Assembly (NCBI GenBank): GCA_025594325.1
Contig: JANHCV010000014.1
Span: forward strand, 930,001-994,000
Source of the DNA: Blastocladiella emersonii ATCC 22665
Lineage: Eukaryota > Fungi > Blastocladiomycota
Direction: 5' to 3'
Length of the DNA stretch: 64,000 nt
Every line of letters starts with the position of its first letter. Positions within the stretch are counted from its first letter, which is position 1. Position numbers and translations under genes: made by a program. Of the stretch, positions 2,684 to 45,539 are shown piece by piece. The notes below the pieces were generated by a model that was given only the letters and a program-made list of their open reading frames with translations, was not told the DNA's origin and did no database searches.

Positions 2684-3599
2684 GTCGCGCCCGTGGCGTC
2701 GCGGAACTCTGCCGAGCACTTCCTCGCGTCGCTCAACCTCTAATGAATGTCGGACGTGCACCGTGAGGCACAAACGGCCACTCGCTTGTGAATACATGAT
2801 TCTTTGATTTACACTCGCTGCATTGAACACGTTGCTCCTGTTATCGGCTTCAGCGCGCGTGGCTAGGCGAAAACTGATTTACAGGTGACAACGCCAGCAG
2901 GGGGCAATTCTGCAACGTTGCGTTTCGAGGTCGTTTTCATGATTTAGTCGTGAACTCGGTCCTCGGATGAATAGACTAGAGGAAAATCATATACGCGAGA
3001 ACTTCAAAAAAAAGGAGGAAGCAGGTGCTTGGGGCTGGGAGCTGCTGTGTTCTCCGCGCCCTCTGCCACAGAGCAACGGATCTGTTACACCTCTATCCCG
3101 TGGATTCGCCACGATTGCGGGTTGGGTCTGAGAGGACCACCTGGCCACGGGATCTTACGCTAGGCTCCCAATCATGATACGTGTGGGTCTGTCGCGGGAC
3201 ATTCACCGTACGCGGCCCAAGCCTCGTCTGCTCCACTGGGTAGCAAGCCGTCTCGTTCCTAGCATCCCTGGTTCCTGCATTGCTGATGTGGACTGAACGA
3301 GTAGCGACAGGGACTCGAACCCTGCTCGCCAGCCCGGAACCAGAGAGGCACGGCCGATCCGGCTCACTACCCTCCGACTGCACAGAGAACAAATTCGCCC
3401 ACGAGTCTGACCCCACGCGCGAGCATCGGAATGCAGCACAACATGTCACTGTTCGGAATGCTATGCGGTGATTGCGGAGGGGACAAAGCGACGGCTTGCG
3501 TTCTTTCCACGCGCGAGTGTGAGACACGTCTCGAAACGCGTCTCGCATTGGTCACGCGAAAGTCACATGATGCCCGAATGAGCTCCCGATTAGGCTCGC

Positions 3600-8767: not shown

Positions 8768-10100
8768 TCAATGGCGCGTCTTGGCCTTCTTAGCCGCGGG
8801 TCTTGGCGCCGCGGCCGCGTCCGACTCGGCGGGAGCCGCCGCGGCCGCCTTGCGCTTCTGCTTCTTGCCGGCGGCAGCGGTCGCCACCTTAGCAGCAGCG
8901 GATTTTGGTGTCGCGGGGGCGGGCGTCGGCTCGGGCTCGGGCTCCGGCTGGACCTCCTCCTCGACTTCCACCTCCACCTCCGCCTCCGCCTCCGCCTCCT
9001 CGGCAGCAGCCTCCGTCTCCTCGACCTCGTCCTCGTCAACGAGCGCGGCATCGAGCGCGTCGATGGCGAGGCACGTGAGGCGGCACTTGGCGTCGAGCTC
9101 GGCGATCGGCTGGACGGGCTCGCACTTCGCGTCAGCGGGGACCTCCCAGACGGCGATGCCGCCGGTACTGCTGGCGGCGGCGACGTAGTGCAACGTGGTG
9201 CCGTCCTCGGCGGTGAACGAGGTGCACTGGACCGAGCGAATGCGCGAGGTCGGCTTGGCGGTGCGGGCGAAGGTGGCGATGGTGCGGATCGCGCGCTCCT
9301 CCTCCTCCTCCTCCTCGGCGTCGTTGGCGGGCTCGGCCGCCTCCGAGATCTCGATGGCGATGAAGGACCCGTCCTCGGCGCCGATGGCGACGCGGCGCTC
9401 GTCGATAAAGGCGAACGCGTTAAGGCGGACCTGTGGCGACGCGTGGGTCGCGAGCGTCGACGTCGACGCCGTGTCGTACAGCACGACCATGTGGTTGAAC
9501 AGGATCGCGTAGGTCGAGCCCGACGGCGAGAACTGGATGGCGCAGGGGGCTACGTGAGAGGAACAGAGTGGTTAGGGACGAGTTACGGTCGCGATGGCGA
9601 AGCCGCGTACTGTCGGGGAGGCGCGTCTTGGACGCCTTGAGCCCGCGGAGCAGGTTCCAGCAGATGATCTGGCGGTCCGCCGCAACCGTAAGCGCGAGCT
9701 TGCCCGAGGGATGGATCGCGATCCCGGCGATCGCGGCCTTGTGTCCCTTGAGCGTCGTCAGCGGCTCCCAGTCCTTTGTCCGCCACATGACGAGCTTCCC
9801 GTTCTCGTCGCCGGACATGAGGTGCGTGGTCTCGAAGGCGGCGAGGGCGCTGACGGTCGCATTGTGGAGGAACAGCTCGCCCATGGACCGCATGGTGCGG
9901 AGCGAGAAGACCTTGATGAGCTCGTCCTGCCCACCGGTGGCGAGGACGCCGCCGGCGCGCGGCGAGATGGCGACCGACTTGATGCACCCGATGTGCGCGC
10001 CGAACGCGAACAGCTGCTCCGAGGCGGCCGTCGCCGTGTCGAGCGCGTAGCCGAACAGCAGCCGCTCGTACGAGCCCGCGACGATGCGGAGGACGGGCAT
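8768..10100 (-). CDS. MAK11: WD40 60S ribosome biogenesis factor, MAK11/PAK1IP1-like; intron 9550-9610
   Basis: LRIVAGSYERLLFG, AHIGCIKSVA, LATGGQDELIKVF, TLKGHKAAIAGIAIHPSGKLALTVAADRQIICWNLLRG, and a C-terminal CRLTCL motif. Confidence 0.88.
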
Positions 10101-39578: not shown

Positions 39579-39924
39579 CATCACAAAACCCGGAACGGTA
39601 AACTGGGACCATATGAGCTGAAATGGGTGTTGGCCAGCACAATTGACTTCATATGAACTGCCCTGATGAATTGGGCCTCATACAGAGCGAATTGAGGGTC
39701 AGAGACTTGGGCCGAGCTGGACCCAATTCGGGGCCAACGGAGCGACAGGTTCGGCGGCGGGAAGTACTCGATATATGAGCGGCGCGAAATGTGGGATAGC
39801 AGTTGAGGGGGCAGATGTGCGCGCGTAGCGCGCTGCGGCGTGTGAAGCGGCCGCCGCGCGCTAGTGGATTGAGTCCAGGAAGCCTGGAAGCTCGCCGATG
39901 TGGTACTGGTCGCGGCTCACGCAC
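39579..39924 (+). repeat. Orphan inverted copy (346 bp, about 94% identical) of the element right end at 43429-43774
   Basis: Reverse-complement alignment by eye shows about 21 substitutions, mostly transitions. It includes the TIR and the last codons of the transposase-like ORF. Confidence 0.92.
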
Positions 39925-40401
39925 TCATCACAAAACCCGGAGCACCCAAATTGGCGCGAATTGGGCCTCAATTGCGTTCATACGAACGGCGGCCGAATTG
40001 GGGTTTTCATAGCGGTCGAACTCGGCCTCAATTGGGCTGATATTGCCTCAGTTGGGCGAAACGGCTCAATTGATTGCAATCGGCCCCGATTGATCCCGTT
40101 TGGGCCCGTATGACTTGTTTTGGTGCCGACTGGGATCAAGTGATGGCCGGGCGCGTATCACGCGCGAATAGGGCTATGGTGTGCATCCTGATGCCCATTC
40201 TGATGGTTTGATGGCCTGGGTCACGTGCGGCCGGCGTGACCGCGTATGTTCATATCGCAATAGATCAATTGCTTTCACCGTCATGAAGTCACGAGAGTCA
40301 CGAGATGCTGAATAATAATATATCGCGTCATAATCCGACCGCTCGCCCCGCGCCCCACGCCCCGCCCGCTCACCCGACGCCAGGAGCCACACGCGCCGCT
40401 G

Positions 40402-41725
40402 CTACTTCTTCTCGGGGCCGATGGTCACGCCGAGCAGCTCCTCGGCCGCTTCCCGCGCGTCGAAGGCATCCTGGGCGTAGAGCGCGTCGACCACGGCCTT
40501 GTGGGCCGCCGTCGCCTTGTCCTTGTCCATGGACTCGTAGATACCCTCGTGCGCATGCGCCATGACGAACTTGCACGCCTAGCGGTACGAGCGCCGCTGG
40601 TCAGCGGGGGTGGCATCGCCTAGACAGTGAGCGCGTATCAAGACCGCGATGGCCGCAATGATCTCGACCGCGTACTGCTTGATGGTGCCAGCGTCGTCGG
40701 CCGCGACCGTGGGCGCGTGGTCGGGCCGCATCCACGGCTTCATGTCGCGCTCCTTGTTGCGGCTCGGGCAGTGCAGGAGCTGGATCATGGGCGCGAGGTC
40801 CTCGATGAGCTCGTCTGTTTAGAGCGTGCGCACGAAGTGGGGTAGGGTCAGAATCGAGCACATCGCGTACGGGGTCATAGCACGTACCACCCTTGTGCGG
40901 GTTGAGGACGCGGGACCAGCACGTAAGAGATGATCACGGGCGCCTGGGTCGCGCTGCGATCCGACGGCGGCGCGATCGTCATGTTCTGGAGCTGGAGCAC
41001 GTAGTTGCTGGCGGCACTCTTGGCCGAGGTGACCAGCAGGCCGCGCGCGTCGGCAATGGTCATCGAGTCCTACACGGCCGTGCCGTGGTAAGCAAAGGTC
41101 ACTGAGGGCGACCCACGCGCAACGTACCGACTCGTCGCCGCGTTTCCCGCGCTTGGTCTTGTGCGAAAACTTGCAGCGGCGCTTGTGGAACAGCTCGACA
41201 AACGCCTCGTCGCCCGACGGCGTGTAGGGGCCGCGGATGAGGACGAGCGTCTTGCGCGCCAGCGTGAAGGCCTTTCCGGGCGACTTGACCACGCGGGTGG
41301 CGAGCTGGACGCGCGATGGCGTCGGTGGCGATGAGGGCGAGTTCACGCGCGGCGCTTGCGGCGGACGGGGCGGAACACGGCGACCGTCGGCGCCGACGTG
41401 GTCCTGGAGCGAGAAAGGCGGGCAGGTGTGAGTGGACAAGCGTCTTGAGCGCGAAGCTTCGGGTGTAAGGATGCAGGGAGGGGAAGATTACGACGTGGAC
41501 GCCGCACAATCGCGCCGCACCGCGCCGTTCAAGGCAGGCTCGCGGCGACAGCAGCGCGGTAGGCAGCGAGACCAAGTCGAGCGGGAGATGAGATGGGCGG
41601 CGGGCGTGGGAGCAGGGAGCAAAGTGGCGGGCGGGAGCAGGGAGCAGGACGGCGTACCTCGACCTGGCCTTGACCTGAGCCACGGCCACGAGCCGGGTCA
41701 CGGTCGCCTCGAGGGTCGACGGCAT
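40402..41725 (-). CDS. Orphan multi-exon gene inside the TIR element
   Basis: Several GT-AG introns and high-GC3 exons (RVVKSPGKAFTLARKTLVLIRGPY; LIEDLAPMIQLLHCPSR; ACKFVMAHAHEGIYE...VTIGPEKK*). Start position uncertain. Confidence 0.6.
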
Positions 41726-42106
41726 CAGTACCGCAGCCTGTGCCGAAGTTAGTTCCACGGCCGCGACCGCTGCTGCTGCCGCTACGCGACTCGCAGGGCC
41801 AGTCGGGGACCGGCCGCGGTCGTGTCTCGAGCAGCGACACGGTGGCGAGCGAGCGAGCGCTTGAGCCACTGCGACCGCGAGCGTTGCCGTCCGGGGTGCC
41901 ACTACAGCTGCCAGCGCGAGACGCGGAGGGTGAGACCGAGCGGATAGCGTCGCGGCGTCGTGGGCCGCACCTCAGCTACGGCGGCGACGTGCGTCCGTGC
42001 GCGTCACAGATGGAGGAGCGAGGGCGATGCATGGCGCTACATGGAGCCAATGGTCGGCGGCGGAGCGGGAGCGGAAGCGTGGGCGACGCAGCGACTTTGA
42101 GCCGGA

Positions 42107-43492
42107 ATGGATCCAAGACACCGACCACCGGCGCGCGCGCGGCCAAGTCGCTTCGTTCTCAGCGATCAGCTGACCGCCCGATCGCGCCTCGTTCAGGGAG
42201 GACGCGACGTGCCACGGGCGCCACGAGTGCCGCCACCGCCCGCCGACCCCGCCGACCCCATCTTCGCTGCCACAACACTCTGCAACGTCTTTAACTTGAT
42301 GCAAACTCATGAAACTAGCCGGATGCATACGGCTCTGCGTGCAGCTGCGCTCCGCCGCTACTTCACCAAGTCGGCCTTGGACAACGGCGACGTTTGCGCT
42401 TCCTCCTCCCACCGCAGCCTCTTCACCCAATCTGAGACCTGCTCGTCGTCGACCTGCACAATTGGGCGACCAATCTTAGAGTATTCTGCACGGGCGGGTG
42501 CTGACGCGAGCTGTGTGTGAGAAAGTGCGCCTTGCACATCGAATGCCGCCTTCTGCTGCCCACCATCGAGTCAGTTCACATGTGCAACAGGGCCCTGGAC
42601 TGAGAGTAGTTGCTCTGCGCGGCTGAGAGATACGCTCTCGCTTCTGCTGCTTTCAGTTTGTTTGGAGCCACCTTGATCCGCTCGCGCGTCCGTGTTGGGG
42701 CACCCGCGCACCCCCTCGCCCAGCAGCTCAACACGCTCAACAACTTCGAGCAGGTCGCCACGGTGGGCGTCATGAACGTCATCGACGAGGCCGGCGGGAA
42801 CAGCGGCGCACGATGGCGCTACAATCATCGATGCCCGTTGTCGCGTAGCTCATGCCTTACCAGACGCTGATCCTCGCGCGGCACAGCGAGTTCCTCGACG
42901 AAACGGTCCAGGAGTCCATACACGCGCGCGTCGTTACGCTGTACGGCTCGCTTAGCTGGGTTACCATGATCGTACGTTTTCGCGTATGTGACGCGCGCCC
43001 ATCGCTGCGTCGATTCACGCGCGCAGTCGCTGACGGGTGCTCGCATGCTTGTAAGTCCGCCTTGACGATGGCCAGCGGCGCTTTGTCGAGCCGCGCATCT
43101 TCCTCGAGTTTGACTACGAGGATGGAAAGGGCACCATGTACGCCTTCAACGTCGTGTTCGGCTACCACTTTCAGCGGCAACTCAACGGGCCGCACGACGA
43201 CCTGGGCTACCTCAAGCTCACGCGAAGCGCCGCGCCCTTTGCCGTGTCGGCCGCGGCCGTCGCGGTCGCTGCTCATGTCGTGCCCGCGTCCTCGGCGACG
43301 ACGAGCGCGCAAAAGGTGCTCAAGGAGCTCAAGATGCCGTTCGTGCGTCCCGAGAAAGGCGCCCGCTTCAGTGGGTCGCGGGCCACGGCCGCGCGCCAGA
43401 GCCACTTCACGCGCTTCTGGCTCAACCCGTGCGTGAGCCGCGACCAGTACCACATCAGCGAGCTTCCAGGCTTCCTGAACTCGATCCGCTAG
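42107..43492 (+). pseudogene. C-terminal remnant of a Plavaka/EnSpm-like transposase
   Basis: PYQTLILARHSEF...RRFVEPRIFLEF...AVAAHVVP...HFTRFWLNPCVSRDQY matches from memory the fungal Plavaka C-terminal pattern (RAAHLIP...F..YYVN). No catalytic core is visible and the 5' boundary is uncertain. Confidence 0.5.
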
Positions 43493-45539
43493 CGCGCGGC
43501 GGCCGCTTCACACGCCGCAGCGCGCTGCGCGTGCACATCTGCCCCCTCAACTGCTATCCCACATTTCGCGCCGCTCATATATCGAGTACTTCCCGCCGCC
43601 GAACCTGTCGCTCAATTGGCCCCGAATTGGGTCCAGCTCAGCCCGAGTCCCTGACCCTCAATTCGCCCTGTATGAGGCTCAACTCATCAGGGTAGCTCAT
43701 ATGAAGTCAATTGTGCTGACCGATACCCATTTCAGGTCATATGGTCCCAGTTGACCGTTCCGGGTTTTGTGATGACTCTGCCCCACACCCAAGTGCCAGG
43801 CGCATAAAAGCTTTCCAGGCGGCGCAGGTTGATTCTAAGCGTTTGACTGGACCCGTTTGCGCAACGAGGGATCCAAAGACAACTTCGGGTTGCGTCAGGC
43901 GGCTTCAGGTCAAAGCGTGCGTGACACTGGGAGAATAAGCATGGTTGGGTTGAGATCAGTCGCCGGACGAAATAAGTTCGGAGCCGACGACACGCGGCTC
44001 ACGACGCAGGATGGTCGAGTAGAAGAAGACCGAGAGCCGCGTTGTGCAACGCAAGAGCGCGCGGTCGAGCTTAAGTGCTTATTCAAATACATTGCGTCAA
44101 GTGGCGGTGAGTTTCATGCTGGTATAGGGATACATTGGAGGTCGAGCGGGAGAGCGAGTGGCGTGCAGCAATCAGCGGGACGCGGTCACCAAGTTCCCCG
44201 CTGTCGACCCCACGCGGGCCAACGAGATATCGCGACGCGTCTCACCGTCTCACTGTTCATGGATCGAGCCCAGCGTTTGTGCTTGGTTGTAGCCCTGGCG
44301 ACACACCCCGCCCCCGCGAGGCCATCCACGCGCAGCTTTCGCGCGTGACGGCGCCTGGTCATAGACAATCGCGTTTTCCCTGCTGCTCATCCAGCTGAGA
44401 TTGTGCGTTAGGTGCCAATCCGCATGGCTTCGTGATTCGGTCGTGCCTCGCGTGGTTCATCGCCAGCACGTCGATCACGTGTTGCATTGGGCCGCGTTAC
44501 GAATCGCGCGCTCGCGGTCAAGTCCCGCGGCTCGCCTCCCCCTGCGCTCCCGCTCAAGGCAACCATGAAGCAATAACGCACACGACACTTGATGCAACAG
44601 CGTGTCGGCACAACACAGGCCGGGCTGCCACGCTGAGATGTGCAAGACGTCAGTTGAGGTGGAGCTCCGCGGGCCGCGCGAGTGCGCCAAAGCGCCTGCC
44701 AGTTTCACGGACGTCCGCAGTTGTGCTGCTCGTCAATGAAAACCTGCAGCTGATCTGCCGAAGCGCAAGACTCGGGTTTGTGCCCATGTCGCTTGCCAGG
44801 GTGTGCACTACGACCCGCCCATCTCGAAGGACGCTGACCCGCATACCTTGGAACCCTCGGGCACTGTGCAACTGTCTCTTTCCTGCGTCCGGGTTCACTT
44901 CAAGCTCTGGTACCGTCCTTTCGCGACTTGGCGCGGGAGGATCTCCTTATTGCAAAGACCATCTCAACGATCCGCTCCTACTCAACGTACACCTGAGCGA
45001 CCGACCCTGCTCACTCGATGTTCTCACTCACTCCTAGCGGTCGCTAGCCATACGACTGGCGCAATTGCAAGGTCCTACGACGACCGCGACCCGTGGTCGC
45101 TCGCATTCCTGCGGCCGGTCCGCGGCCGCGCCCACGCGCCGGCCCTGCGCCAGTCGCTCCCAATCTCGCTCGTTTCGCCGGCTCGGTGCCGCATGGCGCG
45201 ATCCGCGTTTTGCGCCCCAGCGAGAGGAACGTCGCGTCGTTCTCGCCCATTTGCGCGCGGGGCCGAGTCGGTTGGGGCGAGCGCTGTGCATTGGGTGGTG
45301 TAGGACCATCGGACGCGTGGGCGTGGTCGCGGATCGATTCGAGGTGCGAGGGACCGCGTGGTGGTCGTGTCGCGCGGTTGCGGCGGATCCGGGATGAAGG
45401 ATGTATCGATTCTTGCTCACTCTATCGCGCGATCCTCGCTCCACTCCCTCCGCTAGGGCCTCGCGTACGGGTCCGTCGACTGTTGGGCGTGGGATCCAGA
45501 CGCGCGTTGTGAGGACCTTGCTCGCGACCTCAGACTCGA

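Follow-up and report, generated by a model that had tools for sequence, protein, structure and literature searches.

The window analysed here is a 64,000-nucleotide stretch of the genome of Blastocladiella emersonii ATCC 22665 (C6:930001-994000 of an assembly of 32.65 Mb in 21 contigs), and it contains a 3,849-bp element (39926-43774) that is bounded by an exact pair of 16-bp terminal inverted repeats (TIRs) and carries two divergent, spliced genes, both labelled by NCBI as hypothetical protein in every copy of the element (Table 1). The window held the 16-mer, CATCACAAAACCCGGA, at 39579 (+), 39926 (+) and 43759 (-), three occurrences as compared with about 0.03 expected by chance, and past the first 16 bp the two ends of the element, named A and B, diverged from each other. 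The segment from 39579 to 43774, which makes up 6.6% of the window, held 14 of its 37 AATTG and 8 of its 19 CAATTG motifs; those of the element were mostly clustered in the outermost 170 bp or so on each side. The direct repeat with 60-bp spacing in the B end was located at 39957/40017. No Rfam match was found. An earlier note on this DNA, prepared from the sequence alone, had described the exact TIRs, the subterminal enrichment of AATTG-type motifs, the two divergent genes and the end of the plus-strand gene about 280 bp from the right TIR, and all of these were recovered, with the stop codon of H9P43_009441 lying 282 bp from the element end.

We located the members of the family by a genome-wide search for the 16-mer together with a search of the assembly with the whole element. 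The family proved to have five near-full copies, along with a degraded copy and a single end fragment, and the aligned-column identity among the full copies was 93.4-97.2%. Exact 16-mer pairs were present at four loci, while the fifth copy (C3) had one altered end, and CATCAC...GTGATG was found at both ends of each of the four and at the A end of C3. When up to one mismatch was allowed over the whole assembly, every match to the 16-mer belonged to the family, and a genome-wide search with the terminal 11-mer produced only six extra matches, none of them paired, compared with a control count of three.

A 2-bp target-site duplication (TSD) was observed in three of the four readable copies (GC, TC and CG), and the probability that all three match by chance is about 2e-4. 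In the window copy, the ACT on both flanks that the earlier note had pointed out was present, but a 3-bp duplication was not a rule of the family, as the other copies show. The caveat attached to the left ACT in that note also held, since at least its AC lies within the adjoining 346-bp fragment (fragment O); because the element adjoins this fragment of another copy, the ACT of the window copy is ambiguous as a TSD.

Table 1. Features of the element in the window (window coordinates) and members of the family in the assembly (contig coordinates unless marked)
Feature	Position	Strand	Remarks
Left (B-end) TIR	39926-39941	+	exact 16-mer, CATCAC...
Right (A-end) TIR	43759-43774	-	exact 16-mer
Left ACT, candidate 3-bp TSD	39923-39925		AC inside 346-bp fragment
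Right ACT, candidate 3-bp TSD	43775-43777		
B-end subterminal zone	39942-40110		six AATTG, three of them CAATTG palindromes; 60-bp-spaced direct repeat
A-end subterminal zone	43600-43758		AATTG/CAATT motifs
H9P43_009440, spliced orphan gene	40402-41725	-	NCBI model 262 aa
Central segment between genes	41726-42851		no coding signature; flat codon-position GC
H9P43_009441, spliced orphan gene	42852-43492	+	NCBI model 178 aa
Fragment O, C6 end fragment (inverted copy of family A end)	39579-39924 (window)	-	346 bp of A end, 94% identical to 43429-43774
C6 copy	39926-43774 (window)		3,849 bp; CT/AC at 2 bp, ACT/ACT at 3 bp, match only at 3 bp
C5 copy	426540-430515		ends intact; GC/GC 2-bp TSD, no 3-bp match
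C11 copy	1182629-1186667		ends intact; TC/TC 2-bp TSD, no 3-bp match
C20 copy	981747-989089		nested insertion inside; CG/CG 2-bp TSD, no 3-bp match
C3 copy	1109037-1112845		A end intact, B end starts CGC, not CAT; TSD unreadable
C20 degraded copy	1661573-1663296		truncated, 75-94% identical

Both genes were found in all five full copies and, when the whole assembly was searched at the DNA and protein levels, at no other locus. This answers the question raised in the earlier note of whether the minus-strand gene always travels between these TIRs. Across the family, the predicted proteins measured about 180-190 amino acids (aa) for the plus-strand gene and 260-300 aa for the minus-strand gene. 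The exons had a GC content of about 0.6/0.4-0.55/0.85-0.96 at codon positions 1/2/3, compared with 0.65/0.39/0.70 in a neighbouring host gene, and alignment of the copies revealed canonical introns (GTACG..CTGAC..YAG), with individual splice sites mutated in some copies. The ratio of non-synonymous to synonymous polymorphism (pN/pS) among the copies was about 0.95, a value to be expected under neutral decay after insertion. In the window copy, the last intron of H9P43_009440 has AT and not GT as its donor, a change common to the C11 and C20 copies, and retention of this intron would bring in an in-frame TAG at 40579-40581. The last-intron acceptor of H9P43_009441 is TAA and not TAG (around 43052), a change present in no other copy. 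Deletions of about 92-95 bp were observed in the minus-strand gene of four copies, the C5 copy, which is the most intact, being free of them. The five-copy alignment also contained 306 singleton substitutions, 151 of which were C>T or G>A, with 99 of these 151 at CpG; as read from the alignment, this bias fits deamination of methylated CpG.

Between the two genes, with 91-95% invariant columns, the stretch from 42300 to 42700 was among the family's best conserved internal parts, on a level with the last exon of the plus-strand gene, and could be a shared promoter or cis element. Within 42508-42637, nine of ten substitutions fell at the same position modulo 3. The long open frames of the central segment were within chance for its base composition (P = 0.03-0.16), and those of 334-408 aa that are seen in three copies were ruled out as a hidden gene (P = 0.03-0.08, flat codon-position GC and no homology).

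We performed homology searches with the spliced NCBI models of the two proteins, the exons being searched by reference. At E values of up to 5, Pfam gave no match for any open reading frame (ORF) or annotated protein, and PDB sequences gave no match to the profile of the minus-strand protein or to the central open frame. An exhaustive phmmer search of 1.84 billion representatives with the plus-strand protein returned this genome's own copies only, word-based searches with both proteins detected no relative outside this genome, and a metagenome scan with the minus-strand protein found nothing. Resident loci for Plavaka (PF18759) and Transposase_21 are present in the genome, and comparison of the element and its proteins with these loci by tblastn, blastn and hhalign revealed no similarity, the hhalign probability against the resident Plavaka ORFs being below 1%; the element likewise contained no Transposase_21 (PF02992) signal. 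The plus-strand gene had been taken in the earlier note for a transposase-like C-terminal remnant, but Pfam, phmmer and hhalign all failed to support this, and a suspected likeness of the minus-strand protein to the first-aspartate region of CACTA/Plavaka transposases was supported by neither Pfam nor hhalign. AlphaFold2 models of both proteins had predicted local distance difference test (pLDDT) values of 31-35 and no confident fold, and were not used.

To place the family, we compared it with described transposons. PlavakaB families, which were described from Agaricomycotina, have 2- or 3-bp TSDs and 5'-CATCA..TGATG-3' termini (Kojima 2025, PMC12730594), and both characters were found in the present family; the Plavaka transposase (PF18759) was absent from every ORF and annotated protein in the Pfam search. 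The CATCAC ends, considered non-canonical in the earlier note, thus carry the published PlavakaB signature (PMC12730594), while its broader proposal, a Plavaka/CACTA-like (CMC) DNA transposon with TIRs, was supported. Canonical CACTA/EnSpm ends were not observed, as the termini are CATCAC and the TSD is 2 bp in three of the four readable copies; the AATTG/CAATTG enrichment does correspond to subterminal repeat arrays in the CACTA/EnSpm style. Since the family encodes no recognizable transposase, we consider it non-autonomous, and its sequence characters, taken together, suggest that it is probably a non-autonomous element with PlavakaB-type ends belonging to the CMC superfamily. It adds a new B. 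emersonii family to a known kind of transposon, and our search found no published Plavaka description for Blastocladiomycota.

The element might instead be a Pack-type deletion derivative with one or two captured host genes, or fragments of such genes. Its genes do have a host-like GC content at the third codon position and host-like intron signals, and the acquisition of accessory genes is known from Plavaka elements, namely of TET/JBP in basidiomycetes (PMC12730594) and PAG1-3 in red algae (bioRxiv 10.1101/2025.02.11.637652). For capture of a host gene, one of the options raised in the earlier note, no evidence was obtained, as no parent or paralogue of either gene was found outside the elements in the assembly, nor any homologue in the databases searched, and we consider this origin unlikely.

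Another option is membership of the family in some other superfamily whose TSDs are short, for example another CMC branch like Mirage or a PHIS/ISL2EU-type group, in which case its CATCA ends would be convergent. Ends and TSD length are weak characters when no transposase accompanies them, and the genome does contain other families with 2-bp TSDs and different ends, for instance the CACAGTG-ended element described below. However, CATCA..TGATG combined with a 2- or 3-bp TSD is the specific PlavakaB signature (PMC12730594), and the same end architecture is found in a resident Plavaka that bears its transposase, which makes convergence rather improbable. This resident, an intact single-copy element of 6,646 bp (C17:1222860-1229505; L021:1861-8506), has a PF18759 Plavaka ORF, an 8-bp TIR, CATCGTGA, with CATCG ends, a TT TSD, three GAATTC palindromes near its left end and a second spliced gene unrelated to H9P43_009440 and H9P43_009441. 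It thus resembles the 3,849-bp family in its CATC-type termini, 2-bp TSD, subterminal NAATTN palindromes (GAATTC vs CAATTG) and extra spliced gene, and differs from it in its transposase, its shorter TIR and its single-copy state, with no DNA or protein similarity between the two. When CATCA-type TIR pairs were sought around the three PF18759 loci (C17:1222860-1229505, C17:~1490000 and C21:~1152000), the CATCGTGA element alone was recovered. The second of these loci (C17:~1486280-1493440) is flanked by inverted GTCGCACGAC-like repeat arrays at L022:2278-2370 and 9285-9440, and the PF18759 frame between these arrays is broken by two in-frame stops.

We also considered whether the family could be autonomous, with one or both orphan proteins being an unrecognized transposase or a DNA-binding pair that acts on these ends. 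The presence of both genes in every full copy and nowhere else, their strong coding signature and canonical introns, and a TIR common to no other element of the genome would be in line with such a role. Against it, the proteins are small, show no match to any transposase family, to a PDB chain or to the resident Plavaka proteins, evolve with a pN/pS of about 1 among the copies and, as far as the structure models can indicate, lack a confident fold, and we regard this explanation as very improbable. There is a similarly slim chance that the proteins suffice for transposition by themselves, as a module not recognized before, or that they act as an essential TnpA-like partner binding the CAATTG arrays; if this were true, the 3.9-kb element, although it has no known transposase domain, would be autonomous or semi-autonomous.

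An autonomous copy, which the earlier note had proposed to look for, was not found in the assembly. The 7.3-kb C20 copy was ruled out as a candidate, as it consists of a 3.9-kb copy and a nested, unrelated transposon of 3,486 bp (L014:1215-4700; C20:981961-985446). The nested transposon has CACAGTG-type TIRs and GGTTAGG/CCTAACC subterminal motifs, and its 2-bp TSD (GT) was proven by comparison with uninterrupted copies of its host element. It has at least four further full copies, two of which are 99% identical and lie inverted about 8 kb apart on C15, and it contains no convincing ORF. The degraded copy on C20 was likewise ruled out as the remnant of a larger ancestor, since host sequence lies upstream of it and the NCBI protein annotated there appears to be chimeric. 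This protein, H9P43_006955 (L016:5480-7670; C20:~1660760-1662950), appears to join a host-gene exon, with a weak match to the TTI1 C-terminal tetratricopeptide repeats, to exons of the degraded copy.

It is extremely unlikely that the larger segment 39579-43774 is the mobile unit, as a composite or foldback element whose inverted ends measure 346 bp. Its two arms do show 94% complementarity, with an intact 16-mer at the end of each, but the structure was present in no other copy, the flanks of 39579 and 43774 have no common 2- or 3-bp duplication (ATG vs ACT), and the left arm is less similar to the right arm than it is to other copies. Fragment O begins with an intact 16-mer (39579-39594), and a single base separates its inner end from the B-end TIR. 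Its identity was 95.4% to the C5 copy, compared with 93.7% to the window element's own A end, indicating that it is an older, independent piece and no fresh duplication. The adjacency of fragment and element has several possible origins, namely insertion into an older copy whose remainder was lost, capture of filler DNA where the chromosome had broken, or aberrant transposition. No empty site for the window copy was recovered, its right flank occurring once in the genome, and no other family remnants were found in either flank. The degraded C20 copy has an internal deletion, the right edge of which lies at the same element position as the inner breakpoint of fragment O (element position 3504, window 43429/43430). 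At the breakpoint sites (window 39922-39925 and L016:7668-7680) only 1-2 nt support a common junction, and the coincidence could reflect a hotspot or common ancestry.

Several points weigh against our preferred assignment to a non-autonomous, PlavakaB-ended family. The assignment to Plavaka was made from the ends and the TSD length alone, the defining transposase being absent; the resident Plavaka loci share with the family neither the TIR past CATC nor the CAATTG motif, and no mobilizing partner was identified among them. In the window copy, the flanks match at 3 bp and not at 2 bp, and its left flank is a fragment of another copy. The exhaustive phmmer search covered the plus-strand protein only, and with models at the low pLDDT given above the orphan proteins may still have a cryptic catalytic fold.

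With these points in mind, we infer that the family was mobilized in trans. A Plavaka-type DDE transposase supplied from elsewhere would have recognized the 16-bp TIRs, and probably also the subterminal CAATTG/AATTGG arrays, after which the element would have been excised and then reinserted via a staggered cut of 2 nt, occasionally 3 nt. The two orphan genes, which may be accessory proteins or cargo, moved along in every transposition recorded in the genome. The copies are now decaying neutrally, the window copy with splice lesions in both genes.

With these results, the PlavakaB end signature, which was published in 2025 from mushroom-forming fungi, is extended to Blastocladiomycota, suggesting an ancient origin within the lineage for both the terminal motif and the short TSD. 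The results also correct five pairs of NCBI hypothetical-protein models, which represent genes carried by a transposon and decayed to varying degrees, in addition to one host/transposon chimera. The family is small and well delimited, and is suited to testing the roles of the two orphan genes and of the palindromic subterminal motifs; otherwise, it is an ordinary, old and defective transposon family.

Among known systems, maize En/Spm, a CACTA element, has short TIRs and subterminal repeat arrays, and its dSpm/I deletion derivatives are non-autonomous and mobilized in trans. Its termini are CACTA, its TSD is 3 bp, TnpA and TnpD are produced from one transcription unit, and its transposase is of the Transposase_21 type. 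The present family resembles En/Spm and dSpm/I in combining short TIRs with subterminal arrays, and differs in its CATCAC termini, its mostly 2-bp TSD, its two divergent genes and the lack of Transposase_21. Pack-MULE and Pack-CACTA elements are, like the family, non-autonomous TIR elements that enclose host-like, intron-containing genes, whereas neither of the two genes described here has a donor in this genome. The giant Plavaka elements of red algae (bioRxiv 10.1101/2025.02.11.637652) are transposase-bearing and much larger, at 17-19 kb, but they too carry accessory genes, one of them of unknown function, a likeness to the genes of the family that holds by description only. The PlavakaB elements of Agaricomycotina differ in encoding a Plavaka transposase, in their hosts, the present one being a blastocladiomycete, and in carrying a TET/JBP dioxygenase in place of two orphan genes, and yet they have in common with the family the CATCA..TGATG termini, the 2- or 3-bp TSDs and a tendency toward extra genes.

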